Sequence record: MW812339.1
Reading direction: 5' to 3' (one strand)
DNA: 64,000 bases
Below are positions 38,921-61,236 of this stretch, piece after piece. The notes under the pieces were generated by a model. It saw only the letters and a program-made list of their open reading frames with translations, searched no databases and was not told where the DNA came from. Within the stretch, counting starts at the first letter, position 1. Each line of letters begins with the position of its first letter. A program made the position numbers and the translations under genes.

Positions 38921-41026
38921 TTATACTGGTATTTTCACTGTTGCCATCAAATCATCATACAGCGATGCCGGTATCTCGCGCTCGGTATAGAAGCCGACGC
39001 GATCGATGTTATTCTGCTGCCCTTCAAACAACAACATAGGCAACGCTGAGCGTACACTGATAAGCGTATTGTGGTCAACAAACCGTTTACCTGTTGCGGT
39101 GGTGGCATCTTCACTATCGAAGCCAACTGCTGGGAACGGATTGGTCGGTGATTCCACACGGGATATCGCCAACATAATCGCAATATGCGTCATCGGTATA
39201 CCATTCAACTTACGCTGGATGTATTTGAACGTGTCCATCAGTGCGTACGTGCACTGTTTCTCCGTCGCACCACCCATTTCTACCAACGTGATTGGTTTAA
39301 CGCGACCCTGTTTCTTATTCATCTTCACGGTGGAAGCCGTGTTAATGATTTCTACAATGTCCTCGTTCTTATCTGCGGCAATGGAGCGGAGTTTGGTTTC
39401 CAACCCTGCCACAAATTCAGCCATCGATTCAGAACGGTTAGTGTAGATAAGCACCGGATGTTGTGTCTTCCAACTCTTCAGTGGCAGATGCACCATTTTC
39501 TTCACAGTGCGAATCGCATCACGCTGCTTCAGGAAGTAATGCAGGAACGGTTTGGAGAAGTTCCCGCATACGCCCATACGCACGTCAATAGAATCTACTG
39601 CAACCGGTTCATTGTCCGGACCCAGACGTTGGAATGTCAGGTCGGTAATTTCCGGTAAGGCTGTTTCATCAACCGCATCGAGATCTTCGTGATACGCAAT
39701 CTGGCTGAGTTCAGAATACACCTTGTCTGTTACCACGAGTTCATACTCTGCCCATTCACCGCGCTGAGGCTTCGATGTCAGGCACAACCCTTTCACAGAA
39801 TTGTGTTTGTACTCGGTCATATACTCGCGCATACGCGGCGTCAGAATCAGGTTCAGCAGATAACGCAGGAAGTCGAGGTGCTTAGTGGACAGAATCCCCT
39901 GAGTACCTTTTTCCGAGATAGAGGTTGAGGCTAAGTGGCCGGGCGACGTCCCTTCAGAGAGGTTATAAATCAAGTCACCCATGCAGGTTGCACAGATAGA
40001 CTGATTCGCCATCTCTTTACAGGTCATCGCACTACGGAACACAATCGGTTTCCCGACCAGCTCCTCATAACCCCCTTTCTCGAAACGCAACCACGGACCA
40101 TTACTGTCTTCTTTGCGGTAACGCATCCCCACCATTGCCTTATACGCACGCTCATCGAGCTTGGTATCTTTAAAGGTGTAACGGTGGGCATGGGTGGTGC
40201 CACAATCGTCGTAGGTAAAGTACATCAGCACGTTGGCGGCTAACTGCAGCTTACGTGAGGCATACTCGGCTTCGGCAATCTTATCTGTGTTATACAGATG
40301 CGAACGCGACGTAGCCCCAGACTCTTTCAGGCGACTGATAACGGAATGCATCCCGGTAAAGAAACCTTCCCACACTTGGTTCGTGTAGACACGGGAGTCA
40401 ATCTCTGACGTTTTCCCACGCACAAAGGCTTGCAGTACCTGGTTCATCTTAATGGTGCCGTCCAGTACGGACATTACCACCGGGTTGTATTTCAACGATG
40501 GGTCTTTGAAGATGTTCTCAATCAGCTTGTAGGCTTCTTCGACCATGTCCCGACCGTCTTCATCGTATCCAGTTGGGTATTGTTTCTCCCACTCGCGGAT
40601 AAGTTCGAAGTTCGGATGGTCGTAGATTTCCATCATCGTGTCGTAGTCGATGGTCGTACAATATGCCAGCAAGTTCTTCACTGTCATGTTGAACGCATCA
40701 GCATAGACATGTTGACTCAGGATATAGCGCGTTTCGGCCAGGTCTACCCCAGCCTTGCGTGCCAATACTGCAGCCTCGGACATAAAGTCCAGATGGAGAT
40801 CGTCTGTAGCCACCTGGTCCGGACGATACGCCATCGTCGAGGGCGTAGGCACCTGCGGATACAAACGCGATACACCCCAATACGGCCAACTGAGTTTGAT
40901 GTGGCGACTGCCCATTTCGAGTGACTTACCATCATCGAACGTGACGTAATAACGTCCACGCAGTTTCCACACCTGGTCAGAGTTAAGTGCGCGTAGGTCA
41001 CGCACGTGGACAGAACGACCCGCCAT
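38921..41026 (-). CDS. Non-virion RNA polymerase beta' C-terminal subunit (phiKZ gp74-like)
   Basis: DDCGT, FRSAMTC...ICATCMG Zn site, and trigger-loop-like GTQGILSTKH. Confidence 0.85.
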   Translation of the reverse strand: MAGRSVHVRDLRALNSDQVWKLRGRYYVTFDDGKSLEMGSRHIKLSWPYWGVSRLYPQVPTPSTMAYRPDQVATDDLHLDFMSEAAVLARKAGVDLAETRYILSQHVYADAFNMTVKNLLAYCTTIDYDTMMEIYDHPNFELIREWEKQYPTGYDEDGRDMVEEAYKLIENIFKDPSLKYNPVVMSVLDGTIKMNQVLQAFVRGKTSEIDSRVYTNQVWEGFFTGMHSVISRLKESGATSRSHLYNTDKIAEAEYASRKLQLAANVLMYFTYDDCGTTHAHRYTFKDTKLDERAYKAMVGMRYRKEDSNGPWLRFEKGGYEELVGKPIVFRSAMTCKEMANQSICATCMGDLIYNLSEGTSPGHLASTSISEKGTQGILSTKHLDFLRYLLNLILTPRMREYMTEYKHNSVKGLCLTSKPQRGEWAEYELVVTDKVYSELSQIAYHEDLDAVDETALPEITDLTFQRLGPDNEPVAVDSIDVRMGVCGNFSKPFLHYFLKQRDAIRTVKKMVHLPLKSWKTQHPVLIYTNRSESMAEFVAGLETKLRSIAADKNEDIVEIINTASTVKMNKKQGRVKPITLVEMGGATEKQCTYALMDTFKYIQRKLNGIPMTHIAIMLAISRVESPTNPFPAVGFDSEDATTATGKRFVDHNTLISVRSALPMLLFEGQQNNIDRVGFYTEREIPASLYDDLMATVKIPV

Positions 41027-43263
41027 TATTTCTTCTCCCGAATTGGACGTACTAACTGGAACCCTTCACAAAGGTGGATGTTACGAATCATCCTGTCGAT
41101 TTGTGAATCCCCCAACGGCATCTTATTGCGATCGATTAACACCCCTGGGTTAGTAGGTGTTTGGGAATTGAACATCCCCGTCACGATCGCGCGATGCACT
41201 GCTGGGTTGTTGGCACGGTCATGCGTTTCCGGGAAGTTACCCGGACCAAAACCATCCGTCAGTCGTTGTTCTGACGGGCCGCCCCATTTCAGGGATTTCA
41301 AGTTAATCGGATACGAGCCACGGCCCTGGTTGGAAGCATCGATGGAGCCCAGGAAGTTGGTATACATGGAAGAAATGCTGGAAAACTCACGACCGGTTTT
41401 ATCCAGGCGTAACGTTTCTACCAGACCCACGTAAAACTCATTCTTCGTCCATTCCTGTTCACCCTGATAGTTGGTAATCAGCAGCTTGGATTTACGCGGT
41501 GCGTATTCGCCGAGACGCTGACAGATTTCTACCTGAGTGTCGTTCAGTTCGTGTGGCAGCCAGATGCGGACGGTGAAGTCGTAGATCTCTTTAAAGAGTT
41601 CCAGCTTAGACTCTACCGTGTTGTGGCTGGCATTCAAATAGAACGTCCAACGTGGGTTGTACTTGTCGATATAGTCCATCAGGATGGACCACGCTTCTTC
41701 TATCTGCCCTGCAGCCAGAATCGGCTTCAAGCGCATCTTCAACTGCTCAGATGCGGCTGACCAATACATGTGGAACAGCGCAGCATAAGTCGAGCGACGA
41801 ATTACGGCGTTCATGGAACGGATGACATGCACACGTTCACCGAGTTCGTTAATCGGCATTTGGTCATCAGGACGTACTGCCCCGACAATCCCTTTCGTGC
41901 CCGAGCGGTCGGTAATCTTCGAGGATACGGTTACCGGAATTGGATAGCGGACAACCACGCGGATGGTGTAACTTCCGATTGGGTCCCACAGTCCACGTTG
42001 CACCGGTTGAGAGATTTTGTTCAGCACGTTTTTATCTGCAGAACGGTTGTATTCACCCTTACGCATCGCATCGTCGTATTCACGACCAATTTCTTCGCGG
42101 AAGTCATTGTAGACTTCATACGTTTCAGACGAGAACGCCTTATCCAGAATCTCAAACGCCTTCGGTGACCAGACAATGTTCTTGTCTTTGGACATCGAGA
42201 AATAGAAACGCACCATGTCGTTGTAGAAACGTTTCAGGGCGTTGGCGTAGTGATCTAACTCCTTCTTGTTCTCTTCTGTACATGCGATGTTGTTGGTACC
42301 GCGATCGCATTTGGTTTCATCGCGCCACACCTGAATATCAACCACACGAGAACCCGTACGTTCCATCTTTTCGATGTCGTTGGCCAGACGTGCTTTGTAA
42401 TGCTCTGGGTCAGCATCAACATATTCACAGCGGTCGAAGTTCGGTGAGGCGTGTTGGGTTTCCCCGACATGCGAATCGATAGCTGCCCACAGCTTATCGA
42501 AACGACGTGCTGCCATGACCAGACCATCGTCACGAATCGCACCACCCACGGGCGGCAAATACTGCGGACGGCGAGTGCCATCAATCTGCGTTGTGCCGTA
42601 AGTGTCTAACAGATACTCATCGTCGCGCAATGTGAAGTCAATGGTACGCAGACCACTGGCGTGCATCATTGCTGCTGCGGTTTCAGAGATGGTGTAGGAA
42701 TCCTCAATGATGTCCGGATGCGACATCGTTACGGTTGGCAGGTTAACCCCGTCAACAAATTCACCATTCTGCTGTGCCGGTAACACGGTGAGCATTTCAT
42801 CTTTTTCCAGTTGCTGCGTCTGGCCACGTAACAGCGCCTGCAGTTTACCGGTTGGTGTTTTCTGTGAAGAGAACACGTTGTCGTGATCGGTGTAATACTT
42901 AATGTCGATAACATCAATCATGACTTTGCGCTGATTGGTTAGTTCAGTGCGCTTAAAGAACAAAACATGTTGGCGCGGTTCATGGTCACCCTCACGACCG
43001 TAACGCGCAAATACTGCAGCCCGAGTAACACCTTCTTTTGTCGTGTAGCTACACACAGTACCGCTATCTTCAACAATGTCATTAAAACAATAGTCGTGAT
43101 AGTTGGTATCAGCGCCAGTGAAGTGCGGAGTGGGTTGGGGATTATCCAACGGCACCGCCGACTTCATATGTCCACCTACCATCGAGGCACGAGCCCCGGA
43201 TACCGTATCAACGTTAATCTCACGGTCAGCTACGCTTGACTTGAGTTCAACTGGTGTTTTCAT
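41026..43263 (-). CDS. Non-virion RNA polymerase beta C-terminal subunit (phiKZ gp71-73-like)
   Basis: ARASMVGGHMKSAVP, IIEDS and SKITDRSGTKGIV (the GDKxxGRHGNKG equivalent); uninterrupted. Confidence 0.88.
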   Translation of the reverse strand: MKTPVELKSSVADREINVDTVSGARASMVGGHMKSAVPLDNPQPTPHFTGADTNYHDYCFNDIVEDSGTVCSYTTKEGVTRAAVFARYGREGDHEPRQHVLFFKRTELTNQRKVMIDVIDIKYYTDHDNVFSSQKTPTGKLQALLRGQTQQLEKDEMLTVLPAQQNGEFVDGVNLPTVTMSHPDIIEDSYTISETAAAMMHASGLRTIDFTLRDDEYLLDTYGTTQIDGTRRPQYLPPVGGAIRDDGLVMAARRFDKLWAAIDSHVGETQHASPNFDRCEYVDADPEHYKARLANDIEKMERTGSRVVDIQVWRDETKCDRGTNNIACTEENKKELDHYANALKRFYNDMVRFYFSMSKDKNIVWSPKAFEILDKAFSSETYEVYNDFREEIGREYDDAMRKGEYNRSADKNVLNKISQPVQRGLWDPIGSYTIRVVVRYPIPVTVSSKITDRSGTKGIVGAVRPDDQMPINELGERVHVIRSMNAVIRRSTYAALFHMYWSAASEQLKMRLKPILAAGQIEEAWSILMDYIDKYNPRWTFYLNASHNTVESKLELFKEIYDFTVRIWLPHELNDTQVEICQRLGEYAPRKSKLLITNYQGEQEWTKNEFYVGLVETLRLDKTGREFSSISSMYTNFLGSIDASNQGRGSYPINLKSLKWGGPSEQRLTDGFGPGNFPETHDRANNPAVHRAIVTGMFNSQTPTNPGVLIDRNKMPLGDSQIDRMIRNIHLCEGFQLVRPIREKK

Positions 43264-43329: not shown

Positions 43330-43653
43330 ATGCTCGATAGCTTCACTACCCTCGCCGAAGTAATACCTTCGCCTGATTCGACCAAGTATAAGGTGTTGCA
43401 TGACTACGCAGATTTCCTGCGCAAGCACCCAGATACAACAGAGGAGGTCGTCGACCCGAAATACGCATGGCCGGAGACCCATAGCTTCTACGCCTATTGC
43501 CGTCTAAAGGAATACGACAACAGTATCATTTACCCGATGATGCTGATGAACGGAATTGACACCCCATTCGACTTCACACCCGACATCAAATCTTTACTGG
43601 TGCCGAGCGTCAGTGTAGTCAGCAACATCTTGTCTACAATTGTAGATGCCTGA
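43330..43653 (+). CDS. Small protein, possibly a LysM / T4 gp53-like baseplate wedge component
   Basis: AAGGAG RBS. The pattern YPMMLMNGIDTPFDF...LLVP resembles gp53/gpX LysM proteins. Confidence 0.45.
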   Translation: MLDSFTTLAEVIPSPDSTKYKVLHDYADFLRKHPDTTEEVVDPKYAWPETHSFYAYCRLKEYDNSIIYPMMLMNGIDTPFDFTPDIKSLLVPSVSVVSNILSTIVDA

Positions 43654-43689: not shown

Positions 43690-45057
43690 TTAGATTCGAG
43701 CAGAGCCGAAAGGCAGGTTGGAGAAGTTATCACCACCCAAACCGCCTAAGGCATTGTTCGAACCTCCCAGCAAGTTATCCCCACCGAGTCCACCACCACC
43801 TAATCCCCCACTGTTACCCAGCAGGTTCGTTGAGCTGGAGCTATTACCCAAAAGCCCATCACCCAGACCGCCTTGTTTTGTTTCAGCCTGGCCACGCAGA
43901 GCCGCACCCAACGAAATGTTGTTGATGCTGTTCTTTGGAATCTGGCCGTTGTTTTCAGCTAACGTACGCTGCAAGGCAGGCGGCAGTGCATTGAAGTTAC
44001 TCGATGCAGTTTGCTGCTGTGCTTTCTTCGCGCGGAAGAATGCTGCCGGGTCGCTGAGATCGACATCCGCAGGCGGAGCGTCCTGAGATGCCAAACGTTG
44101 CGTCAGGTTATTAGTGCCGGATGGCGTACGTCCGATACGGAAATCAGAGGCCGTGGTATCCTGGGCCGCTTCATTACGAGGCCCCGTGTTATACGGCAGA
44201 GTCTGAATCACGTTATCGAACACGTGCATGTTGTCCAGCTCACCAATCCATTCTTCTTCTAACGGACGTAGTGGTGTGTAGTCACGAAGACCACGCACAA
44301 CCAGGTTATAGTTGGTCACGTATTGTGCCCAACCGCGCGCCAGAGAACCGAAGTACGGACGTGGGTCATTGGAACCGACCACGCTTGGGTACCAACCGAA
44401 CACGGCAGACAACAGATTAAACAGAATCACCTTATCCTGTTTGCGCTGCAGCTTTGCCCCGAAGAACATCGCGGTACCGTCAAGTGACTCTTCTTCGAAC
44501 ATGTGCTGATAGTTCGATACACGAATGTACTTGACGCCTTCGATGGACATGTCGCTGGAGATAAACAGACGGGTAATCTTCGTCTTCTTATCTTCTTCCA
44601 GCAGACCGTACACATAGTTCTTCACCGCATTCCAGCTTTGTACCAGTTTCTTGTCCATGGTCGGATCTTTGATATCCGCACAGACAACATCACTCAGAAA
44701 CTTCTTGTACGCAGCCAGGCGAATGGTTTTACCTTCGGCTGCCGTTTCCAGAATGGCATCGATCAACTCGAAGCTCTTCAGGAACAGATTGGTGGTGATC
44801 GTTTTCTTCAGGAAACGGATAGTACCCGATTCCCCCGCCAGCACCGATTCGCACAGCGGATGGAACGCATGACATTCACTACCGTCTTCGTCTTCCATCC
44901 CGTTCTTAATCATGGCTGCGGTTGGAAGCGCCAGACGGCGCTTCACTTTATTGTAGGTGAACATCGCAGGATGGCCATCATCCATCGTCAGCAAATCACC
45001 GTCGAACCCGTAGCCCAGGGAGGTCAGGAACGAGCGATAGAACTCAACAATCTTCAT
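43690..45057 (-). CDS. Conserved chimallivirus core protein downstream of PicA (phiKZ gp70-like)
   Basis: 455 aa with a low-complexity GLG-rich C-tail; synteny. Confidence 0.6.
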   Translation of the reverse strand: MKIVEFYRSFLTSLGYGFDGDLLTMDDGHPAMFTYNKVKRRLALPTAAMIKNGMEDEDGSECHAFHPLCESVLAGESGTIRFLKKTITTNLFLKSFELIDAILETAAEGKTIRLAAYKKFLSDVVCADIKDPTMDKKLVQSWNAVKNYVYGLLEEDKKTKITRLFISSDMSIEGVKYIRVSNYQHMFEEESLDGTAMFFGAKLQRKQDKVILFNLLSAVFGWYPSVVGSNDPRPYFGSLARGWAQYVTNYNLVVRGLRDYTPLRPLEEEWIGELDNMHVFDNVIQTLPYNTGPRNEAAQDTTASDFRIGRTPSGTNNLTQRLASQDAPPADVDLSDPAAFFRAKKAQQQTASSNFNALPPALQRTLAENNGQIPKNSINNISLGAALRGQAETKQGGLGDGLLGNSSSSTNLLGNSGGLGGGGLGGDNLLGGSNNALGGLGGDNFSNLPFGSARI

Positions 45058-45069
45058 GGTTAGTAATCC

Positions 45070-46800
45070 TTAATCTAAAAGACCTTTGCCCAGACCACCG
45101 CCGCCTAAGCCGCCCAGACCATTGCCCAGGTCGTTGCCTGCGCTACCGGTGTCCAGACCGCCCAGTAATCCGCCACCTAGTCCACCCGACGTAGGGATGT
45201 TCGACAGGATGCGATTACGGCCGTTACGTTTTTCGTAACCGTTGTAACCTTCTTCAACGGCAGTCAGCAGGGTCGCTGTGTTCTGTGCCAGTTCACCCAC
45301 GTACAGAAGGTCGGTGGTGTTACCGGTATGCAGACGGAACTGCATGAACGATGCGTAGGTGTAATACTCTAACGGTTCGTCATCAACACGGATTTCGATA
45401 CGCGTTACGGTACCCAGTAATGCTTTAACCAGCATGTGGCAGCGTACGTGGTTGTGCTTCGTAACCTGAATCATTGCTTCACTCAGGTTCTGATAGAAAC
45501 GACGACCTAACGCCTGCGGCAACTGACCATGCGTTAAGCTCCCCACGGACTCTGGCAGAATCTGCAACGTGGCATCGCTCATGATATCCGCGTTGCGGTT
45601 ATCGTAAACGAAGCTGACTTCACCCAGCAGGTTACGGGACATGATAGAACCCAGCATCATCGCCAGGTCGTACGAGACCAGTGAACCCTGAGTGGAGTAA
45701 CCGTTACGGCCAATCCAGTGGTCAGTCTGCGAGGTCAGACCCATGCCCAGACCACGACGCGCTGCCATGGACAGAGATTCGCTAATACATTCATCCATCC
45801 GCAGTGGGTTGGTGATCGCATCGCGCAGGTCTTTCAGACGGAACGTAGCTTTACTGGTTGATTTCCAACCACCCGATACATCAGACAGGTTGTTCTGCAA
45901 CGCTTGACGCATTGATGAAATCAGTTCGTGGTTGCTGAAGTTACGGATAACTCCACGCTGTTTCAGTTCAGACTCAACCCCGATGGAGTTATTGCCTGTA
46001 AAGAAGCTTTCCACGCTACCCAGTTCAGTGTCTACACCGGAACTTGCCAGATATGCATTACTGATGGCAGATACGTAGTTCTCAGGACGGGTCAACTGCG
46101 CCACCATCAACTGCGGCGACGCGTTAGCTGTGGCTGACAATACCGAATCTCTCGTCGGAACGTATTTCTCGCCCGTGTTCATTTCGATACGTTTTACCAT
46201 GTCCGCCGCTTTCGCAATGGAGATGATATCAACCGCACTTTCCGTTTGTCCTTCGACGGACAACGCTTTCGATAACACGTAGTTATCCAGCAGGCGATAC
46301 GAATCCGGGTTCAGCTGACGACCCCCGAACGAATCCTGCATGTACGTTGCCTGCATCCCGTAAATGTCGTTGATGTACAGCACCATGTCATCCGGCAACA
46401 TCCCGCCGAGACTCTGGTCGGCTTGGCTGGTATAACCGGAGATGATGTATTGCGTTTCTTGCGAACGGGTATTGTTGTTAGCGATAGGCTTCGCAATCAA
46501 TACCGCGACAAAGTTAAAGATGCCGGTGTCGCGCGATTCGTACGCAAACTGAATCGGACTTGCGTCGTCATCGGATACGTTAATGAACGGACGTTCAAAT
46601 CCGTTCTGACCACCGTCGAACCCGACGATGCCTGATAATGCTTGTTGGTACTGCTGTGTTGCCACAGCTTTCTCACCGCCCAGTTCGACCGCTGCTGCCA
46701 GGTCATCCAATGCGCCAGATGAGGCGTTGAAGCCGATACGGCGACGAATCTGCTCTGGAACATCATAGACCGGGTACATCTGTAGATTTACGAGTTGCAT
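45070..46800 (-). CDS. picA: Phage-nucleus protein importer PicA/Imp1 (phiKZ gp69-like)
   Basis: 576 aa in the conserved order ChmC, RNAP fifth subunit, PicA, gp70-like, RNAP beta. Identity inferred from synteny. Confidence 0.65.
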   Translation of the reverse strand: MQLVNLQMYPVYDVPEQIRRRIGFNASSGALDDLAAAVELGGEKAVATQQYQQALSGIVGFDGGQNGFERPFINVSDDDASPIQFAYESRDTGIFNFVAVLIAKPIANNNTRSQETQYIISGYTSQADQSLGGMLPDDMVLYINDIYGMQATYMQDSFGGRQLNPDSYRLLDNYVLSKALSVEGQTESAVDIISIAKAADMVKRIEMNTGEKYVPTRDSVLSATANASPQLMVAQLTRPENYVSAISNAYLASSGVDTELGSVESFFTGNNSIGVESELKQRGVIRNFSNHELISSMRQALQNNLSDVSGGWKSTSKATFRLKDLRDAITNPLRMDECISESLSMAARRGLGMGLTSQTDHWIGRNGYSTQGSLVSYDLAMMLGSIMSRNLLGEVSFVYDNRNADIMSDATLQILPESVGSLTHGQLPQALGRRFYQNLSEAMIQVTKHNHVRCHMLVKALLGTVTRIEIRVDDEPLEYYTYASFMQFRLHTGNTTDLLYVGELAQNTATLLTAVEEGYNGYEKRNGRNRILSNIPTSGGLGGGLLGGLDTGSAGNDLGNGLGGLGGGGLGKGLLD

Positions 46801-46811
46801 CTAAATACTCC

Positions 46812-48446
46812 TTAAGAATTAAACCATTCAACTTCTTCTAACTTGCGACGTGCATTAATTACCATGAATTCAGACAAGGTATTGTGCAGTGACAAGTGAG
46901 GGATATAACGTTCTTTGTCCGTCTCACACCGTAACAGCGCAGCTGCTTCTGGTGTAGCCCTGAGATGGAAAAGATATGGGTCGATGTGATCTTTGTGCAG
47001 AAGGTTTAACGACTCCCGTGGTGTTGACTGCGGTTCTAAGTTCCGCGGGTTACGATACTCCTGACGATAATATCTATCCAAATCTGTTTTGAGTTCAGGT
47101 CGGATAGGTTCAGCAGCATAACCGATGGACATCTCCGAGAAGACCATATCGCAACTCAACAGCTGCGCGATATCGTACATCCCGTAATTGAGATAGGTTA
47201 TTTGCGCCAGCGCCATACCGTACATGAAGGCTTCTGGACCACACTCGCTGTACGTTCTGTAGTGTGCACTGCGGTGCAACGCCAAAGCAACCAGCCACTC
47301 GTGCAGAACATAAATCGGACCCTTATGCGTTTCCAGCATGGAGTCGATTAATATCTTCGCATCAGCCGGGGCGGCATTCGGCAGATTCATGGTCTTTAAG
47401 AACCGGCGATAGTTCAGGAACGAGACCTCGGTACGAACAAACTCTTTCATCGGTGCAGTGCTTCGTGCCTGTACCAAGTCCATGGAGTTAATCTTGCCTT
47501 TCTCGCCATTGAACACCACACTCTCTGGGTGCAGTTTCAGCAAGACTGGCTGGTTCGAGATCTTGGTTGCGAAACCGGTTTCGATTTCCTGCTTCACCAA
47601 GAAGTACATCCCCGTGACCACGTTATTGCTGGTCATGGTTTCTCTTGGTAATTCACCACCGATATCTCGGATGGACAGCAGGCGGATAAGTGCGAATGCC
47701 AGAATGTACTCTTCCATCATATCCGTACCGTAGCCACGCATGGCCGCCAGTACCGACAAGCTGGTATTGTTCATTCCTTTATTAGACTGTTCCTTCTCAA
47801 CCTTTTCCATCACGCTTTGCAGGAAGCCTTCCAGTTTCGGAATACCCGGCAGAGACATGATTTCGGTGTCGCGAAGCAGCTCCAGGCAATAGGTCAGATT
47901 GTCGACCATCTTGCGCTGGGTATCGATTGGCAGGTTCTTACCGACCGGGAATGTCCCCATGGTCAGGAACACCGGGATATACGGCTTCACCATCAATGCC
48001 AGAATCAACAGCTCGTAATAGTCCGGACGGATATACGTCATCGCTTCCGGATAGTTGCTGTTCATGTCATCGTGTGTGTCTTCCATGTTCTGCGGAACCC
48101 ACAAACGTTCGATAGGATACAGCTTACGATAGACTTCCGCTTTATGGAACTTCGCGATAGTCTGGATAATCTTCGGCATATGCTTTTTCTGCGTGACGAT
48201 GTCTTCATTAGACAGTTCGTCCAGCATCAAGTACGCCATGAACAAGTCGTCTTGCTCTTCTGGATTCAAGTAGTCCCATACGCGTTGCAATTCCATGAAC
48301 AGGATGTTTTCGCGTGCGACCTTTTTACCATTAGCTTCAACGTAGTCAGATAGGTTGTTATCTTTACGATAACGAAGACCTATAAAAGAAATCTGTTGAT
48401 CGCGATGCTCGATAATCATCCGATCTTTTGTTTTAGTAACTTTCAT
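46812..48446 (-). CDS. Non-virion RNA polymerase fifth (sigma-like) subunit (phiKZ gp68-like)
   Basis: 544-aa helical protein at the syntenic position, with its own early-type promoter. Confidence 0.65.
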   Translation of the reverse strand: MKVTKTKDRMIIEHRDQQISFIGLRYRKDNNLSDYVEANGKKVARENILFMELQRVWDYLNPEEQDDLFMAYLMLDELSNEDIVTQKKHMPKIIQTIAKFHKAEVYRKLYPIERLWVPQNMEDTHDDMNSNYPEAMTYIRPDYYELLILALMVKPYIPVFLTMGTFPVGKNLPIDTQRKMVDNLTYCLELLRDTEIMSLPGIPKLEGFLQSVMEKVEKEQSNKGMNNTSLSVLAAMRGYGTDMMEEYILAFALIRLLSIRDIGGELPRETMTSNNVVTGMYFLVKQEIETGFATKISNQPVLLKLHPESVVFNGEKGKINSMDLVQARSTAPMKEFVRTEVSFLNYRRFLKTMNLPNAAPADAKILIDSMLETHKGPIYVLHEWLVALALHRSAHYRTYSECGPEAFMYGMALAQITYLNYGMYDIAQLLSCDMVFSEMSIGYAAEPIRPELKTDLDRYYRQEYRNPRNLEPQSTPRESLNLLHKDHIDPYLFHLRATPEAAALLRCETDKERYIPHLSLHNTLSEFMVINARRKLEEVEWFNS

Positions 48447-48578: not shown

Positions 48579-49238
48579 TTAAATGAAGCTATCGAAGTCT
48601 TCGTTCGTTGCTGGAGGCTGGGATTGCTGTTGCTGCTGGTAGCCGCCCTGGCGCTGACCGCCGCCTTGACCACCACCGCTGTAACCGCCTTTACCATACT
48701 GACCACCACCGGTGTTGTTGAACTCACGTGGCTTATATTTCTCTTCGAGCAGCTGAATGAACTTCTCAAAGTTAGTGATAAACGCACGAGCACAACGCTC
48801 AGACAGTTCCAGGTCGGAAACCTGCTGGCCATCACGGAAGATACGGAAACCTTTCGGATAGGAGAAGTAGAACTTCTTCTGGCGTGCGCCAACGCCCTGG
48901 ATTTCACCAGCAATCGCGATAAACGGGTTCAGGTTATCTTCACGGCCAACGATGATACTTACCGGCGGTTTGTTGCCGTTTTCGTTGGTGAACTTCAGCA
49001 TCGACTTTTCATTTTTGCGCAAGCAATCCTGCAGCGCTTCAATGATTGTGCGACACACGGTGAGTGGAGCAGAGAAGTAAAGACCTTCGCCTTTACCGAA
49101 CGAGTAGCTGAACTTCATCCCTTCAACATCGCCATTGAAATCGTTAGGTTCAATGTTCAGTTTACGGGTGCGGTTTTGCTGATCCGGTTCGGTTTGCGGA
49201 TAGAGCCATTTGTCTTTGAAAATCTCTTGATTCATCAT
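48579..49238 (-). CDS. chmC: Nucleus-associated nucleic-acid-binding protein, ChmC-like (phiKZ gp67 position)
   Basis: 219 aa with a G/Q-rich disordered tail ending PATNEDFDSFI; synteny. Confidence 0.55.
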   Translation of the reverse strand: MMNQEIFKDKWLYPQTEPDQQNRTRKLNIEPNDFNGDVEGMKFSYSFGKGEGLYFSAPLTVCRTIIEALQDCLRKNEKSMLKFTNENGNKPPVSIIVGREDNLNPFIAIAGEIQGVGARQKKFYFSYPKGFRIFRDGQQVSDLELSERCARAFITNFEKFIQLLEEKYKPREFNNTGGGQYGKGGYSGGGQGGGQRQGGYQQQQQSQPPATNEDFDSFI

Positions 49239-50142: not shown

Positions 50143-51290
50143 GCAACGTTCCTAATGATGGTAGTGACAACATCGGGGTCGTACTTGACCGATGTCAATT
50201 CTTCAAGAATCAAACGCTCGATATTCTCTTGCGTTGGCATTTCGAACACTGGGGCATCGTCCGAAAAACTCTTCACTAACAACTCGTCTTCTTCCGAAGA
50301 CCGAACACGTTCACCGGAAATGTGAAACGCGTACTCTTTCTTCCACCGATTGACATGTTCTGCCAAAGGGGAACCTGCGTAATACTCGACCTCAAACCGC
50401 CCAATAACGGACGACGGATGATTATCGATGTATTCGAGTGCTGAAAGACAGGCAGCTAACTGCGCATCGTAGTCTTCCTGTGCCTTCACTTTACGTTGCG
50501 GGCACGCACGTGGGTTAACCAAGAAGTAATCTCGGCAAACCGTTTCGGTGAAATCGACAATGGCTACACCCTTGTCTTCCTCTTCACCCTGGGCAAGTCT
50601 CTCAGGACTGCCTACAACTCGTATCTTGTCGTGTTCTTTCTTGCGATGGTCATGCCCAATGTAAATGAGGTGCTTGACTCTCGGCAACCAGAAGCTCTCG
50701 TTAAAGGAACGAGGTGACTCGATTGGGAGTTGAAAAGTAAAACAGCCATGCATGAAGATGAAGTCCAGTTGCTCCAATCCACGCGTTGCCATTAACTCTG
50801 CCATTTCTGCTTCAGTAGCAGCGGCATTAATTTCATTTCCGCCACCGGCTTTATACTCGTCTTGCACCCAACCGACAGTAGCATCAAGGGCCGGATCGTA
50901 AAAGATTCCAATCCCAGGCAAGTACAAACAATCGGCACCAATACTGATGTTCAGTGCCTCGACTATTTTGGACTGCCCGTGGTCATGGGACGGCGTTCCT
51001 TCAACGATGCGTACCGCGGTATCTGTGTCTTTCGACCAGCGGAGCAACCAAGTCAAGAAGCCTACAGCTTCCTGTGAATCCTCTTGGCGGAGATGTCGGG
51101 AATCGTCAAATAAATCCCCTGCTATATAAAGAGCGTCGAGCGTATTTTCGCAGCTAACGAGTATTTCTTGCAGCACGTCAACGATGTGCCAGGTCGGCAC
51201 ACGCTTGTGTAACAAGTGAATATCGTTCATGTTCAGAATACGCCTGACGCCCACAGGCTTGCGTGGTGGCCTAGTAATCTTCTCCATCAC
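50139..51290 (-). CDS. sbcD: SbcD/Mre11-like metallophosphoesterase nuclease
   Basis: DIH, AGDLFD, GTPSHD, HG and GHDH calcineurin-like motifs. Confidence 0.85.
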   Translation of the reverse strand: MMEKITRPPRKPVGVRRILNMNDIHLLHKRVPTWHIVDVLQEILVSCENTLDALYIAGDLFDDSRHLRQEDSQEAVGFLTWLLRWSKDTDTAVRIVEGTPSHDHGQSKIVEALNISIGADCLYLPGIGIFYDPALDATVGWVQDEYKAGGGNEINAAATEAEMAELMATRGLEQLDFIFMHGCFTFQLPIESPRSFNESFWLPRVKHLIYIGHDHRKKEHDKIRVVGSPERLAQGEEEDKGVAIVDFTETVCRDYFLVNPRACPQRKVKAQEDYDAQLAACLSALEYIDNHPSSVIGRFEVEYYAGSPLAEHVNRWKKEYAFHISGERVRSSEEDELLVKSFSDDAPVFEMPTQENIERLILEELTSVKYDPDVVTTIIRNVA

Positions 51291-51945
51291 CTATCCCAAC
51301 GGCAGGTTGTGGGGTCGCAGCAATTTGTGCGGTCGGTTGTGCTGCTTGCGCTGTGGCTTTACCGCCAGTAATCCGCGCAACATACTCTTCCAGACCATCA
51401 GGATACGGCAGACGACCGTCCAGCTTGTAGCGTTTGAAAATCCAGTTCAAGAGATCGATGATGTACTTCGCCCGCACCGAGTTTTCCGCATGACTTTGGT
51501 CAGCGATACCGGTTAAGGTGTAGTCAATCATCTGGTACATTTGCTTCTCGCCGACGCTTGGAATCGCTTCGGCTTGTAAACGAATGTGCTCGGTCTCATC
51601 ACTGAGTGACGCCTGGCCATCTACAGTAATCAAAGAACGGCCGGTATTGAGCAGCGCTGGAATGGTGAACAGCAAACGAGTGTTGTCCATGTCATCCACA
51701 ATCTGCAGCGGCACGAAGGCGTTGCCCACGTAATCTATCCAGGTATCGTCGTTAAACGTACCGTCTAACATCCCGGACAGTAATGGAAGACCTTGACGGC
51801 GGAACTGTGCTTCGGTAAAGGTCGAGCACACGTACTGACCTTCAATCAAATCCGCTTCGAAGCTTTTGAGCTTTTCGTACTCAAAACGCATCTTGTCGTC
51901 CATCTTACTTAACGGTACGCCGTTAAATGTCGGTTCCTGACTCAT
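51271..51945 (-). CDS. Conserved hypothetical protein (224 aa)
   Basis: ORF coupled on both sides. Confidence 0.7.
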   Translation of the reverse strand: MSQEPTFNGVPLSKMDDKMRFEYEKLKSFEADLIEGQYVCSTFTEAQFRRQGLPLLSGMLDGTFNDDTWIDYVGNAFVPLQIVDDMDNTRLLFTIPALLNTGRSLITVDGQASLSDETEHIRLQAEAIPSVGEKQMYQMIDYTLTGIADQSHAENSVRAKYIIDLLNWIFKRYKLDGRLPYPDGLEEYVARITGGKATAQAAQPTAQIAATPQPAVGIGDGEDY

Positions 51946-52325
51946 TGCGTATCCTCAATTACAGTTGTTTCTGTTTCCACATAACGTTCCGCATCGTACC
52001 ACACGCCCTGCTCAGACACGCGCAGAGCAATGTAGATACGGAAACGCACATCTGAATCCGGCATATAGTCCCAGCTGGTTTCAACTTCAACCCCTTCCGG
52101 GAATACATTACCGTACAGATTCTCCAAATCAGTCTTGATCTGGTTCGCCATGCCGTCGGGGTCTTGTGCAAAGACTGCTTGAGTATAGGCAAGAGATTTC
52201 ACGTTCTTCTGATAAATCACCGATTGGCTATAGCCGGCTTCGGTATAATGGTTCATCAGCTCACGGATTTTCTCCTGTGGTGTGCGTGCCCATCCTCGTG
52301 TTGATAACGTACCTACAGCAATCAT
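51942..52325 (-). CDS. Probable T4 gp25-like baseplate or sheath-initiator protein
   Basis: 127 aa. IKTDLENLYGNVFPEGVEVE...FRIYIALRV pattern; synteny. Confidence 0.45.
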   Translation of the reverse strand: MIAVGTLSTRGWARTPQEKIRELMNHYTEAGYSQSVIYQKNVKSLAYTQAVFAQDPDGMANQIKTDLENLYGNVFPEGVEVETSWDYMPDSDVRFRIYIALRVSEQGVWYDAERYVETETTVIEDTQ

Positions 52326-52379
52326 TGTGTTCTCCCCGTCGGGTATAAAGAAAAAAAGAGGGGCCGAAGCCCCACTTTC

Positions 52380-52970
52380 CTAGCACGTAGCACCAGTCTC
52401 CGAACAAGGATCACCATCTTCCCAGTCGAAAGCTGACATACGCGCCCAGTTAAGTTGAATATCCACCTTGTCGATACGACTCAGTCTTACCGCACGATCT
52501 TCATTGGTAGCCCATTGCCAAATCTTATCGTCGTCATACTTTGTCGAAATCCCCGAGGTCGCTTCACGGAAGTTATCGTCGGTACGCATGTACGCGTTAC
52601 CTTTGAACACATCCAACTGCGAGAAGCCGTTCTCATAACCTGCTGCCATACCGTCGTTATACAACTTACGATATTCAGGCATGGCTACCAGGAACGGCTG
52701 TAAAGCAGGATTCGCGAATTGGAATTCACCCAACTCTTCTATCTGTCGCACCATCTCAACCGCATCGTTATAACGCAGTTTGCGAGCAGTGCTGAATGTT
52801 TCACGGAAACGCTCCAGTGATAACAATTCCTGACAGTGTTCTTTCACACGGCCGATGAGATCGGGTGCCAGTGCGTCTAATGAGAAGTTCTCTTTGAACA
52901 ACTCAAACACGCCACTGCCTTCGCCCTGTCTCGTCCATACCGTGCTGCCTTGCGCCCACATGCCATCCAT
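52380..52970 (-). CDS. Conserved chimallivirus core protein (196 aa)
   Basis: Directly downstream of the RNAP beta' N subunit; contains FLVAMPEYRKLY..GY. Confidence 0.65.
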   Translation of the reverse strand: MDGMWAQGSTVWTRQGEGSGVFELFKENFSLDALAPDLIGRVKEHCQELLSLERFRETFSTARKLRYNDAVEMVRQIEELGEFQFANPALQPFLVAMPEYRKLYNDGMAAGYENGFSQLDVFKGNAYMRTDDNFREATSGISTKYDDDKIWQWATNEDRAVRLSRIDKVDIQLNWARMSAFDWEDGDPCSETGATC

Positions 52971-52979
52971 TTACTGCTC

Positions 52980-54578
52980 CTATGCTGCTAATACCGCTTC
53001 TAACGGAAGGCCCTCTTCATCGTCCTCATCTGCTTCAATAAGGAACTGGTTCTGCATACTGATTAGCTCGTTATGTAAAACCATGCCGTGTTCTACACGG
53101 TCAACATCGGTGGACGACATGAAACCGTTGTCCGGACGATATTGCGTAGCCAAATCCATTTCAGTTTGGTCGATAGGTCGACGTACCTGGAACTGGTCAC
53201 CGTCAAAGTCACCGTTAGCCATCTTGATAACACGGTCAGAGATACGCAGTGAGCATTGGTTCACATCAGTAATAATTTCGTCGATGTACAACGTCTGCAC
53301 CGACAGCTGTACCAGCGTCGGGTTACGTAGTGGCTCTACCATGATACCCAAACCGCCTGGGGTTTCGATAATCAGTTCTTTAAAGATGTCATCTACCAGA
53401 GGGTCGTATTGCATACACGCTTTCGCGATAACGCGCTCGCACATCCGTGCAGAATAAATCATGTTCAGCAGTTTACTTTCAATATCGACCGACATCAACC
53501 CGACTGACCAACGCCACGGAGCTTTTAACTTCCAGGCATCGTGCGGTTCAGAGATTGGTGAGATTGTAGCACGGCCACCGAACGGAATGTGGGTTGAACC
53601 CACTTTCGCACGATAGTCACCCGGTTTACCTTCCATGGATTCACGACGGAAATCCACGTAGAAGTACGCCAACTGACGATTCGCCTTAATAGCACGACTG
53701 GTCAGGAACCTTGGCTCAATACGCTTGCGCTTCGTGTACAGCAGCGCAATGTTCTTCACGGCATCAATGGCACCCGTAAACACCGGGTCAACCATTACAC
53801 CACGACGACCTTCTTCGGTTACAATCAACTTGGAAGATATCAGTGGCAGATGTTTCGGGAAGAATGCTTTACTTTGTGTTTCGAAGAAAGTCTTCCACTG
53901 TAGCCTTAACAATTCACCCTCCAGTGCATTGTGTCGGTTCGGTGCGAAGATTTCTTTCCAGCACTCTGGCGATGTCAGAATCTGGAAAATGGTCTTGTGG
54001 TGATCTACCAGGTTACGAATCCCACGCACGTATTGATGTTCTTCCAGGATACGTTTTACGGCGTGTGCACGTTTACCATCCGGCTCATCATTACGATAGT
54101 ACGGGTCGATCATCCACATCATTAAATCTGGACCACGTTCTACCGTGACTTTGTTGCGATCGAATTTCTTCAGTTTACCGTTGAAGAATGCATTGAACAG
54201 CTGCCAGAATCGTGGGTTAATGAAGTTACCCATTTCATCCGGTGCACGGAGCCAGACATCCGACTCAATACGGTGCTCAGTCACACGGTAGCCGCAACAT
54301 GGACACTTGCGTCCCAAGTTGTAGCGATGAGCGATAGGTGCCTTACAGTCCAGACTACAAACCGGCGCAGAGTTTAGCTCTTCGTCGATGATGCGGTTCT
54401 GTACCATGCGGTCAATCAGCTCTGAAGTTTCGATTGCATCCCCGTTAATGGCGACATCGTTGATAATGGTAGGCGGTTGAATCTCATTAGTGGCAGCGTA
54501 TATCTGCAATTCAGCCAGATAGTTATCCTGATTCACCAACATAGCGGAAACGCCGTAATACTTCGGTACCTTATTCAA
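52980..54578 (-). CDS. Non-virion RNA polymerase catalytic beta' N-terminal subunit (phiKZ gp55-like)
   Basis: Zn finger CSLDC...CPCC, LRNPTL, and catalytic NGDFDGD. TTG start. Confidence 0.9.
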   Translation of the reverse strand: MNKVPKYYGVSAMLVNQDNYLAELQIYAATNEIQPPTIINDVAINGDAIETSELIDRMVQNRIIDEELNSAPVCSLDCKAPIAHRYNLGRKCPCCGYRVTEHRIESDVWLRAPDEMGNFINPRFWQLFNAFFNGKLKKFDRNKVTVERGPDLMMWMIDPYYRNDEPDGKRAHAVKRILEEHQYVRGIRNLVDHHKTIFQILTSPECWKEIFAPNRHNALEGELLRLQWKTFFETQSKAFFPKHLPLISSKLIVTEEGRRGVMVDPVFTGAIDAVKNIALLYTKRKRIEPRFLTSRAIKANRQLAYFYVDFRRESMEGKPGDYRAKVGSTHIPFGGRATISPISEPHDAWKLKAPWRWSVGLMSVDIESKLLNMIYSARMCERVIAKACMQYDPLVDDIFKELIIETPGGLGIMVEPLRNPTLVQLSVQTLYIDEIITDVNQCSLRISDRVIKMANGDFDGDQFQVRRPIDQTEMDLATQYRPDNGFMSSTDVDRVEHGMVLHNELISMQNQFLIEADEDDEEGLPLEAVLAA

Positions 54579-54659
54579 TCTGTCAACCTCAACAAAAAAA
54601 GAGGGAAGGACAGAGGCGTTAGCCCCTGTCCTAAACCTAATTACTTACCAGTCACGCTG

Positions 54660-56534
54660 TTACAGCTTGAAGCTGCCCAGAGTAACGCCCAGATCGAAGT
54701 CGCTACCGCTTGCGGAGAGGCCATTGCCAGACAGAGTGAAGTCTTCGCCGCCGTTGTTGAAGAACAGGGACGTCGCCATCGTGTTGTAGGCATTAACGCC
54801 AGTCATCGACCAGGTGCAGTTAGCACGGACGAAGTCCAGCAGGCACTTACCGAACACCGGGTTGATCGCCATATCCAGGGATTCGCCAGTAGTGGTCGGA
54901 TTCTTGGAAGCGAACAGAGACGCAGCCAGTTTCAGCATGTAGATACGCTGAGCACGGTTGCCGAACTCACGGTGAGAGTAGGACTGAGCATTCAGGTAGG
55001 TGTACACATCGTTCGCGTTATCGCCGAGTTTGGTGACAACGGATACGAGGTCCATATCCTGGAAGCTACGTTTCTGAGCAGCGCCAGTGTAGACGCCTGC
55101 AACAGTTGGTACCGCTGCTTTCACGATGTGGTTGCACTGGATGGAACCTTTGTAGGAATCGCCCAGAGCCTGCTTAAGCGCAGATGCAAACATAACAGTG
55201 AAGCTAGTTTCTGGTACAGTTTCGCCCTGACCGTCACGCGGGGACATGCCGTTCAGAATAGCGAGGAGCTGTTTCAGAGACTGGTCGTTACCGACTGCGA
55301 TTTCAGACAGCAGAGTAGACAGACCACCCAGACCGTTACCGGCACGGTGGCTCACTACCAGTGCTGCTTCGCGAGGTGCGAACATATCCAGGCAACCTTC
55401 GATAGCTTCTTTGCTACCGTCGATTTTGGATACGTCAGGACGCGCGTCTGGACCCCAGGACAGGTATTCTGCCACACGGGAGAACTTGCGATCGTTCTTG
55501 TTCAGACGTTTCATGAACAGGTCACGCCAGCCGCCGATAGCCGCGATTTCTGCGAAGCCTGCCAGAATCAGAAGCTGACGCTCGTACGGTGCCAGAGAAC
55601 CTTCTGCCTGGGAGTCAACCAGAGATACTACGATTTCAGCTTGCAGCTGCTTCAGGTCGTATACGCCGTTCTGTACGGCTTTCTGACCGGTGAAGCGCAT
55701 GTTGACGAAACCAGTACCGTGAACACGCGGGTACACATTAGCCTGACTGTTATCCAGTAGGGTAGGGTTCGCGTTGTCCTGGTTAGTTGGAGTGTGCTCC
55801 AGGGTGATGGCGAAGTCTGCACGCTGTGCGTGACCGTTACCATCGATAACAGCGCCTTCTTCCAGCGGCATTACCGACGCGTTGAAACGGTCAGACTTAC
55901 GCAGACGCATTTCGCCCAGGTAGCCCACGATACGGCCGAAGATGCCAAGCATCATCTGACCCATCAGCTGACGCGCCCACTGCTCATCCAGCTGCTTACC
56001 GAGATCCGGTACGGAGTTGATGGCCATGAAGTTTGCGTTCGGCAGGTCATGTGCGGACATGATGCTGGCCTGAATAACTTTCAGCGCTTCGTTGTTGAAC
56101 AGCTCAGTGATGGTGTAGTAATCTTCCTGAGCGTTGTTGTTGGTTTCTTTCAGACGCAGTGACTGACCGCGTTCGAAGAAGATGATACCGTACAGCCAGT
56201 GGCCCTGGTATTCGCCGGCAACGTATGCCGCAGAACCCATTTCACCACCAACACCTGCCACGGTACCCCAACGGAAGCGGTTGAGGTATTCGTTGTTCTT
56301 ACGCACATCTTCCATCAGGTTGACGAAGTGAGAAGCGTAAGAGTTAATGTTACGCCAGCCGAATGCGCTGTCGTAAGAACCCACGTTGGAAACACCGGCT
56401 GCTGCACGCTGAGTTGCTGCGTTGTCTGCATTGCCGCCCAGGCCGCCACCAAGACCGCCAGCGTTCTGCTGAGTCTGGTTAGTAGTAGTCTGCTGAGAAG
56501 CGCCGTTGTTGTTTTCGTTTACAATCTTAACCAT
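54660..56534 (-). CDS. chmA: Chimallin, major phage nuclear shell protein (phiKZ gp54-like)
   Basis: 624 aa with extreme codon bias and a disordered N-tail. Lies immediately upstream of RNAP beta' N; two early-type promoters. Confidence 0.82.
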   Translation of the reverse strand: MVKIVNENNNGASQQTTTNQTQQNAGGLGGGLGGNADNAATQRAAAGVSNVGSYDSAFGWRNINSYASHFVNLMEDVRKNNEYLNRFRWGTVAGVGGEMGSAAYVAGEYQGHWLYGIIFFERGQSLRLKETNNNAQEDYYTITELFNNEALKVIQASIMSAHDLPNANFMAINSVPDLGKQLDEQWARQLMGQMMLGIFGRIVGYLGEMRLRKSDRFNASVMPLEEGAVIDGNGHAQRADFAITLEHTPTNQDNANPTLLDNSQANVYPRVHGTGFVNMRFTGQKAVQNGVYDLKQLQAEIVVSLVDSQAEGSLAPYERQLLILAGFAEIAAIGGWRDLFMKRLNKNDRKFSRVAEYLSWGPDARPDVSKIDGSKEAIEGCLDMFAPREAALVVSHRAGNGLGGLSTLLSEIAVGNDQSLKQLLAILNGMSPRDGQGETVPETSFTVMFASALKQALGDSYKGSIQCNHIVKAAVPTVAGVYTGAAQKRSFQDMDLVSVVTKLGDNANDVYTYLNAQSYSHREFGNRAQRIYMLKLAASLFASKNPTTTGESLDMAINPVFGKCLLDFVRANCTWSMTGVNAYNTMATSLFFNNGGEDFTLSGNGLSASGSDFDLGVTLGSFKL

Positions 56535-60734: not shown

Positions 60735-60759
60735 GACTGGCCCCTTGGTTAGTCCTCTG

Positions 60760-60788
60760 CTATAAGACTTCCCGCAAACGTGAAAAAA
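60760..60788 (-). promoter_or_regulatory. Putative middle promoter TTTTTCAC-N15-TATA
   Basis: Same geometry as the promoter of the other polymerase subunit gene. Confidence 0.5.
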
Positions 60789-60825
60789 GAAAAAAAAGAA
60801 ACCCACTCCGAAGAGTGGGGATTTC

Positions 60826-61236
60826 TTAGCCCGCCACGTTGTCGACAATCTCGAAGTCAACATCGTTAAAACCACGGGAGGCCAGTGCCAGTTTCAGGTC
60901 ATCGATTTCCTGTTTGTTGTCCATCATCACCGTGAAGCGGACCGTCACATTCTCGATAATCTGAACGTTACGAATCCACGCATCAGCAGCAACCTTCGGT
61001 TTCCCGTCAGCGCCTTTGAAGATAAGGTACGTGTATTTGTTCACGTTGTCTTCTGGTTGTGCGACGAGCGAAGAATAAATGTTCTTCTGCTCGGCCATCA
61101 CGTCCATGTACGTTTTGGCCATTTCGTACCCAGCCCCGGTAGACAGAATGACCACACGCGTCTCTTGCCCCTTGAGTGGGGTGTCGTACACGATGTTAAC
61201 CTTCTGCCCCGCAACGAGCGTTCTTACGTCAAACAT
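60826..61236 (-). CDS. Conserved core protein (136 aa)
   Basis: GGAGGA RBS; terminator downstream. Confidence 0.7.
   Translation of the reverse strand: MFDVRTLVAGQKVNIVYDTPLKGQETRVVILSTGAGYEMAKTYMDVMAEQKNIYSSLVAQPEDNVNKYTYLIFKGADGKPKVAADAWIRNVQIIENVTVRFTVMMDNKQEIDDLKLALASRGFNDVDFEIVDNVAG

Follow-up and report, generated by a model that had tools for sequence, protein, structure and literature searches.

The 64-kb window analyzed here, by which the whole stretch of DNA taken from sequence record MW812339.1 is meant, derives from Erwinia phage pEa_SNUABM_29 (100% identity), a member of the genus Seoulvirus with the host Erwinia amylovora, and every gene in the record is annotated as 'hypothetical protein'. 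Three of its genes are the subject of this report: that of the PicA/Imp1 orthologue (576 aa; positions 45070–46800 on the minus strand (−); phrog_3141), equivalent to PhiKZ gp69, PhiPA3 gp63, and Goslar gp174; that of the orthologue of PhiKZ gp70 and PhiPA3 gp64 (455 aa; 43690–45057 (−); phrog_3520); and that of chimallin (ChmA), the major nuclear-shell protein (624 aa; 54660–56534 (−)), identified by profile and position. All three proteins carry Gly-Leu tracts in terminal tails, and among chimalliviruses the tails of PicA and gp70 covary strongly in composition within a genome, with the chimallin tails following their chemistry more weakly.

The identities of the three proteins, proposed in the initial annotation from the letters alone, are upheld by iterated profiles, synteny, and matches of chimallin in the PDB. 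Because single-sequence and narrow-profile searches were uninformative, returning nothing useful for PicA, the gp70 orthologue, or chimallin from Pfam, NCBIfam, and the PDB, the assignments were taken from synteny, iterated profiles, and an exhaustive search of representative proteins; PHROGs offered only families of unknown function, and the tblastn matches of PicA were confined to the SPN3US/Erwinia clade. The iterated profile searches, run over all open reading frames (ORFs) of the fetched loci, gave a single match per genome, which was always the syntenic ORF. The PicA-family profile retrieved 201phi2-1 gp125 (E = 5e-6) and PhiPA3 gp63 in round 0, followed in round 1 by PhiKZ gp69 (E = 4e-37), RAY gp244, and Goslar gp174, the PhiKZ, PhiPA3, and Goslar proteins being those described as PicA in the literature. 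With the gp70-family profile, PhiPA3 gp64 (76 bits), RAY gp245 (66), 201phi2-1 gp126 (51), Goslar gp173 (47), and PhiKZ gp70 (45) were all found in round 0. The narrow chimallin profile had no match in the PDB and found 29 relatives among 1.84 billion representative proteins (link sequences at E ≤ 1e-3), and the wider profile (A4) matched the PDB entries 8FNE (E = 9e-24), 7SQQ (4.5e-11), and 8IGG (5.6e-11) over nearly the full length. The chimallin gene is moreover flanked, like PhiKZ gp54, by the genes for DNA polymerase and the RNA polymerase (RNAP) beta-prime subunit, the flanking ORFs of the window being 58452–60875 (with a DTDS motif) and 52980–54578 (with a DFDGD motif); chmA lies between these two genes in PhiKZ, PhiEaH1, Goslar, and pVp-JHP1101.

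Gly-Leu tails in the Seoulvirus window

Translation reproduced exactly the three tail peptides that had been pointed out in the initial annotation. The tract in PicA (45070–45192 (−)) forms the last 40 residues of the protein, with 19 Gly and 10 Leu, and that in the gp70 orthologue (43690–43875 (−)) forms the last 61 residues; the last 77 residues of the latter protein contain 23 Gly, 14 Leu, 10 Asn, and 9 Ser. The third tract, GGLGGGLGG (56433–56459 (−)), corresponds to residues 26–34 of chimallin and lies inside an N tail rich in Asn, Gln, Thr, Ala, and Gly (about residues 1–52; 56379–56534 (−)). Among the 152 six-frame ORFs of at least 100 aa in the window, Gly-dominated G/L runs of at least 6 residues (5 runs) occur only in these three proteins, and mixed G/L runs of at least 5 residues number 9, versus 2.5 expected and a maximum of 7 in 200 within-ORF shuffles. 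A density of at least 10 Gly in 30 residues is also restricted to three ORFs, namely, the PicA tail, the gp70-orthologue tail, and a 219-aa protein (48579–49238 (−)) that iterated profiles and synteny identify as the orthologue of ChmC/Imp6 (PhiKZ gp67, PhiPA3 gp61), again with a single syntenic match per genome. The tail of this protein (approximately 48582–48728 (−)) is G/Q/Y-rich and disordered, and ends in an acidic-aromatic tip, which is present in nearly all lineages sampled. Thus, the remark that no such tracts were noticed in other genes of the window is correct with regard to G/L tracts, whereas a further Gly-rich low-complexity tail, that of the ChmC/Imp6 orthologue, had been missed.

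AlphaFold2 models built with family alignments have confident cores for both PicA and the gp70 orthologue, and the disorder suspected for the tails is borne out by prediction. In PicA, the predicted-disordered G/L tail comprises residues 534–576 (43 residues; 45073–45201 (−)), beyond the last helix (residues 498–534), with a predicted local distance difference test score (pLDDT) of 31–35. In the gp70 orthologue, a confident core extends from residue 1 to about residue 290, and is followed by a low-confidence linker (residues 290–385; 43903–44190 (−); pLDDT 40–63) and by the predicted-disordered G/L/N/S tail (residues 386–455, 70 residues; 43693–43902 (−); pLDDT 30–38), so that both C-tails are below a pLDDT of 40. 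The linker, about 95 residues long with short predicted helices and a few conserved positions (S382, L383, and G399), could represent a second interaction element. Searches of the PDB with the modeled folds gave no significant match for either core, and the cores yield no functional clue.

The tails of the window phage contain only 0–1 FG/GF versus 13 LG/GL dipeptides, and the last 40 residues of PicA hold 13 LG/GL. The 30-residue entropy of the PicA tail is 1.99 bits, compared with 3.67 bits in cores. Both C-tails are nearly uncharged, and have 10–13 stickers each, that is, hydrophobic residues set in Gly/Ser/Asn spacers. No tandem repeat was found in the tail-coding DNA, apart from one weak 15-bp array.

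Conservation and covariation of the tails

Low complexity was scored as a 30-residue entropy below a threshold set at the first percentile of windows from the cores. So scored, all 35 gp70 orthologues have a low-complexity C-terminal region (43–195 residues within the C-terminal 200), as do 33 of the 35 ChmC and 23 of the 35 PicA orthologues, the PicA tail being strong only among the close relatives of the window phage. The gp70 tail is kept across a divergence at which the cores can barely be aligned. Residue-level conservation of the tail sequences is poor, and the tips of PicA are conserved inside subclades, as exemplified by the LLD ending.

The chemistry of the tails differs markedly among lineages, in which L-numbers label the relative genomes sampled. 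G/L tails are found in the window phage, SPN3US, and the phiEaH2 type; true FG-repeat tails in L005, L006, L008, and L009, with 7 FG/GF dipeptides per 70 residues of gp70 and 5 per 40 residues of PicA in the FG-type relatives; NPF or F-based tails in CR5 and Derbicus; tails with GNSLLD or GGSLL motifs in the ChrisDB, Caitlin, and Huxley types and their relatives; Q/M/P/Y tails in PhiKZ, PhiPA3, 201phi2-1, Psa21, RAY, and BUCTxx100; and R/D tails, 60–73% charged, in pVp-JHP1101, PCH45, PhiEaH1, 2050HW, RSL2, and L020. Five tail chemistries occur among phages infecting the single host E. amylovora. Of the conservation anticipated for a common Gly-Leu-Gly code, that of the gp70 tail is complete and that of the PicA tail partial, while the Gly-Leu chemistry itself is lineage-specific and restricted to a small subclade, the Q/M/P and R/D lineages not being nucleoporin-like.

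Covariation was measured as the centred cosine of amino-acid composition between the tails of one genome, with shuffled genome labels as the null; the tails were set by fixed lengths, and the result holds for each of the three tail-length definitions tried. For PicA versus gp70 tails in 27 lineages, the mean was 0.478, compared with 0.000 ± 0.072 for shuffled labels (z = 6.6; 0/20,000 shuffles). In a set of 17 lineages it was 0.39 (z = 4.1), and similar values were obtained inside the SPN3US-like subclade (0.43; p = 1e-4) and outside it (0.40; p = 2e-3). The likeness extends to motifs: GNSLLD is common to both tails in L010, L011, and L012, with GNSILD/GNSILG in L013; both tails carry FG repeats in L005–L009; both are R/D-rich in pVp-JHP1101, L020, and PhiEaH1; and both end with LGLL in PhiPA3. 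In the controls, the tail of ChmC, a neighbouring gene of the cluster on the same strand, showed no covariation with the PicA and gp70 tails (−0.13 and 0.01), and the cores compared with each other gave −0.07.

Several other causes of the likeness were considered and rejected. Paralogy of PicA and gp70 is ruled out by the unrelatedness of their cores (hhalign probability 0.2%), and recent gene conversion or shared tandem repeats by the finding that the two tail-coding DNAs share matches of merely 7–17 nt and contain only the single weak array mentioned above. Host-determined or genome-wide compositional drift is ruled out as the main cause by the flat ChmC-tail and core controls, and also because the core Leu and Phe frequencies stay constant (see below) and five chemistries occur on one host.

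In chimallin, GGLGGGLGG is specific to the window phage, its close relatives having LGGLG or LGG; at the same site, the motif gives way to SFGG...AFGG in the genome of FG type and to GFSVG in those of NPF type. Both free termini were compared, the C-terminal segment being the last 30 residues (54663–54752 (−)), which end with GSFKL and are presumed to be the equivalent of the lattice-docking C-terminal segment (CTS). In 17 lineages, the composition of the gp70 tail is matched by that of the chimallin N tail (0.33; z = 3.5) and C tail (0.35; z = 3.8), and that of the PicA tail less so (N tail, 0.16; C tail, 0.26, p = 0.001), with controls near zero. Serratia phage 2050HW (L039) was excluded from this three-way test, since no chimallin-sized gene is annotated at the expected site between DNA polymerase and RNAP beta-prime (NC_048668.1, 230000–238500), where only small ORFs are annotated.

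A concerted change is seen in two F-type lineages, where LG/GL dipeptides drop to 0–1 and FG/GF dipeptides increase in all four tails (PicA, gp70, and chimallin N and C), with the Leu and Phe frequencies of the cores unchanged. On a distance tree of the cores, the FG type is nested within the G/L lineages and the NPF type is placed on a separate deep branch. In R/D-type genomes, the chimallin N tails are R/E/D-rich (pVp-JHP1101 and PCH45, and likewise distant chimallin representatives) and the C tails are R-rich. A role of the chimallin motif as an element of an import gate, as initially suggested, is nevertheless weakened, in that the motif has only nine residues and belongs to an N tail of poor conservation, whose equivalent in 201phi2-1 (residues 1–47) is unresolved in the structure and dispensable for lattice assembly. 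What stands of the suggestion that the tails of the three proteins are linked is the strong covariation of PicA with gp70, which chimallin follows, and the replacement of Leu-Gly by FG repeats in relatives; what does not stand is a general gate.

Possible functions of the tails

Published work places these proteins, or their orthologues, at or near the nuclear shell. PhiPA3 gp61, gp63, and gp64 all localize to the shell and were proposed in 2023 as candidates for a role in exporting mRNA or importing proteins, and gp63 and gp64 were found together in ChmB pulldowns; the gp70-like protein, whose orthologue is gp64, is thus not the unrecognised component that it was first taken for. PhiKZ gp67, which is both ChmC and Imp6, pulls down with Imp1. 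In three phages, C-terminally tagged PicA gathers in one punctum per nucleus, which is regarded as an oligomeric complex in need of further partners. The published mutations of PicA that alter import all lie in the folded core, and cargo is recognized through a folded surface. The disordered tail of ChmC is required for its condensates with RNA. In the literature searched, there is no description of the PicA or gp70 tails, of their covariation, or of an FG-like model.

The explanation that we favour, and hold to be about as likely as not, is that the tails are co-evolving sticker-and-spacer segments mediating weak like-with-like association among shell-associated proteins. PicA, the gp70 orthologue, and chimallin would each present hydrophobic or charged stickers in Gly/Ser/Asn/Gln spacers, with one chemistry per chimallivirus lineage (Leu-Gly in that of the window phage, and Phe-Gly, Asn-Pro-Phe, Gln/Met/Pro, or Arg/Asp in others) that would be common to the PicA and gp70 tails of a genome and weaker in the N tail and C-terminal segment of chimallin. 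Through weak multivalent contact, matching tails may bind one another, or may bind a shared partner in the shell that bears a tail itself, and such association may bring gp70 and PicA to the chimallin lattice, or keep them there, with lineage specificity, the match between partners counting for more than any single chemistry. We infer that the covariation reflects physical contact and that this contact serves the assembly of the shell or of the import site. The tails cannot be a universal requirement for import.

A number of observations weigh against the explanation by co-evolving tails. Label shuffles correct for phylogeny only in part, and the chimallin signal is weaker inside subclades (n = 7, p = 0.15; n = 10, p = 0.013). 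The composition of the PicA core is slightly positively correlated with that of the gp70 tail (0.14–0.23), and a minor part of the covariation is therefore attributable to proteome-wide composition. The match in PhiKZ is moderate (0.35), since its gp70 tail is Met-rich and its PicA tail is not. A low-complexity tail is missing from 12 of the 35 PicA orthologues, including those of Goslar, RSL2, Yong XC32, and vB_pir03. Finally, according to a preprint, PhiKZ Imp1 and gp70 co-expressed in Escherichia coli failed to co-purify, and the same preprint lists PhiKZ gp70 as a nuclear protein rather than a shell protein.

Other explanations were weighed against the same data. According to the model of the initial annotation, PicA, gp70, and chimallin would form, through their tails, a joint condensate at the import site that acts as a nucleoporin-like selective barrier, and gp70 would be a core import component. 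The predicted disorder, the near absence of charge, and the hydrophobic stickers in G/S/N spacers are as expected for such a barrier, close relatives have genuine FG/GFG/SFG repeats at equivalent positions, the tails co-vary, PicA gathers in a single, presumably oligomeric punctum that would need further partners, and the neighbouring ChmC tail forms condensates. However, many lineages use tails that are 60–73% charged (R/D) or Q/M/P-based, neither of them FG-like; Goslar PicA, tail-less by the entropy scoring used here, is essential and still forms a punctum at the shell; and all mutations of import specificity map to the PicA core, cargo being recognized through a folded surface. The valency of 10–13 stickers in 40–70 residues is also far under that of nucleoporin FG domains, no pulldown of gp70 with Imp1 was obtained, and fold searches with both cores gave no channel-forming or transport-receptor-like relative. 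As a general mechanism, the gate fails because of the R/D and Q/M/P lineages, the functional tail-less PicA, the specificity mutations in the core, and the shortness of the tails; we regard it as very unlikely.

Rather than cohering with one another, the tails might serve as Gly-rich leashes, each with a hydrophobic C-terminal tip that mimics the docking segment of chimallin and plugs PicA (and gp70) into the pocket of a protomer, which we consider unlikely. In chimallin lattices, protomers are indeed joined to their neighbours by the docking of flexible segments from both termini (the N-terminal segment (NTS), CTS1, and CTS2, the function of the latter two being described for 201phi2-1 and Goslar), and the covariation would then be explained by co-evolution of tip and pocket. 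The tips of PicA and chimallin are alike in several lineages (SSFNF and DSFNF in L014, where gp70 ends with GGFSF; NSFTL and DNFTL in L015–16; GHFTF and QPFSF in L018, where gp70 ends with NNFTF), PicA keeps its tip inside a subclade, and the C tail of chimallin resembles the PicA tail in composition, as described above. Yet the tips are unlike in the window phage (GSFKL in chimallin, KGLLD in PicA, and FGSARI in gp70), as they are in the SPN3US, phiEaH2-type, and ChrisDB-type genomes, so that tip mimicry fits a few lineages and was set aside for the window phage. Furthermore, the covariation covers whole-tail composition and internal motifs beyond the tip, and a mere leash would need no lineage-matched stickers. 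It may also be supposed that the tails have no specific function, being unconstrained disordered segments that drift with local mutational bias or genome composition, by which adjacent genes come to look alike. The poor residue-level conservation, the loss of PicA tails in several lineages, and the small signal between PicA core and gp70 tail would all fit such neutral drift, which is disfavoured by the controls: the gp70 tail is kept in 35/35 genomes despite barely alignable cores, the ChmC tail of the same cluster and strand does not covary, four tails go from Leu to Phe while the core frequencies remain constant, both tails share specific motifs without DNA similarity, the chemistry is also followed by chimallin, whose gene is 10 kb away, and the phages of one host bear five chemistries. 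We therefore judge this explanation highly improbable.

The tails assumed to co-evolve may be compared with several known systems. With the FG/GLFG nucleoporins they share predicted disorder, few charges, and hydrophobic stickers (Leu in the window phage, and Phe in the relatives L005–L009 and CR5/Derbicus) spaced by Gly/Ser/Asn, as well as carrier proteins situated at the boundary of a nucleus-like compartment with selective protein import. Nucleoporin FG domains are, however, much longer than 40–70 residues and contain tens of repeats. The phage tails, of 43 and 70 residues with 10–13 stickers, are not of high valency, and those of the window phage have Leu instead of Phe, without the repeated Phe-Gly (0–1 FG/GF). 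There is no homology, other lineages have Q/M/P or R/D tails, PicA of Goslar works without a tail, and the phage nucleus has no known channel or transport receptor. The ChmC tail (PhiPA3 gp61/PhiKZ gp67 = Imp6) is closer in context, belonging to the same gene cluster and to the phage nucleus and being a Gly-rich disordered C-tail, but differs in its G/N/Q composition with Tyr or Trp, its acidic-aromatic tip, its near universality, the absence of covariation with the PicA, gp70, and chimallin tails, and its attachment to an RNA-binding Whirly fold. The architecture of the ChmC/Imp6 tail may recall the C-terminal tip of bacterial single-stranded DNA-binding protein, a likeness offered as a lead.

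The NTS, CTS1, and CTS2 of chimallin resemble the PicA and gp70 tails as flexible terminal segments of a shell protein that make lattice contacts, with tip likeness in some lineages; they are, however, short ordered peptides in defined pockets, whereas the PicA and gp70 tails are longer and of low complexity, and GGLGGGLGG lies in the N tail that 201phi2-1 does not need for assembly. In composition only, the R/D gp70 tails of PCH45, PhiEaH1, 2050HW, RSL2, pVp-JHP1101, and L020, together with the chimallin N tails of pVp-JHP1101 and PCH45, which are R/E/D-rich, may be likened to mixed-charge low-complexity domains of the Arg/Asp or Arg/Ser type in eukaryotic nuclear-body proteins, which is not the chemistry of the window phage.

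The covariation of the tails provides a pointer, read from sequence, that couples gp70/gp64 and the free termini of chimallin functionally to PicA, and by nominating specific contacts it bears on how proteins cross the shell of the phage nucleus, where PicA/Imp1 is essential. The natural FG-repeat versions make the comparison with the nuclear pore concrete, and the R/D and Q/M/P versions argue that matching of partners outweighs any one chemistry. The occurrence of five chemistries on one host suggests that they may help to keep the nuclei of co-infecting phages separate. In a bolder form, which we think distinctly unlikely, matching tails of chimallin, PicA, gp70, and perhaps also of the portal protein would amount to a co-evolving 'tail code', specific to each lineage, that decides which proteins join the shell and import site, a small cohesive plug resembling an FG mesh would form at the PicA punctum, and the divergent chemistries would keep the shells of phages infecting the same host from mixing.

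Gene order and neighbouring features

The PhiKZ locus is collinear with the window: gp54 (shell) corresponds to the 624-aa protein, gp55 (RNAP) to a 532-aa, gp65 (SbcD-like) to a 383-aa, gp66 to a 278-aa, gp67 to the 219-aa, gp68 to a 544-aa, gp69 to the 576-aa, gp70 to the 455-aa, and gp71–73 (RNAP) to a 745-aa protein. The gp68 counterpart (46812–48446 (−)) is assigned by this collinearity. The 745-aa protein (41026–43263 (−)), a beta-like subunit of the non-virion RNAP (nvRNAP) that served as a synteny anchor, matches by tblastn, in 261 phage records (PhiKZ among them), genes annotated as beta subunits of RNAP or nvRNAP. The block SbcD–gp66–gp67–gp68–gp69–gp70–nvRNAP beta was found in every lineage sampled, the collinear genomes being PhiKZ, Goslar, RAY, PhiPA3, 201phi2-1, PCH45, RP12, PhiEaH1, vB_pir03, 2050HW, BUCTxx100, RSL2, Psa21, Yong XC32, RTH11, and pVp-JHP1101. 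Between the gp70 orthologue and the nvRNAP beta gene lies a small gene on the opposite strand (43330–43653 (+); 107 aa; phrog_3455), and an opposite-strand gene of about 110–120 aa occupies the equivalent site in at least 13 distant chimalliviruses (Goslar, RAY, pVp-JHP1101, 201phi2-1, PCH45, RP12, PhiEaH1, 2050HW, BUCTxx100, RSL2, Psa21, Yong XC32, and RTH11).

Further Gly-Leu motifs occur in MW812339.1 outside the window, here given in coordinates of the record. The portal protein (51106–53883 (+)), a homologue of PhiKZ gp129 (PDB 9XPE, E = 2e-50), has a C-terminal tail of about 90 residues that is G/D-rich and strongly acidic, with GFGG and GLGGG motifs. Because the portal of PhiPA3 docks on the nuclear shell, this protein could be a further tail-bearing partner of the shell, though its tail is strongly acidic. 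GGLLGG and GGGLG are present in Gly-rich stretches of the products of 54552–56204 (−) (phrog_8185) and 183487–184743 (−) (phrog_5028), where the G/L motifs are short and internal. Among the relatives, the PicA, gp70, and chimallin sequences in several records of the Salmonella phage series SPFM1–22 (P0041–P0044, P0082–P0086, and P0120–P0123) are block-scrambled, consisting of short identical segments in permuted order, which looks like an artefact of assembly or deposition.

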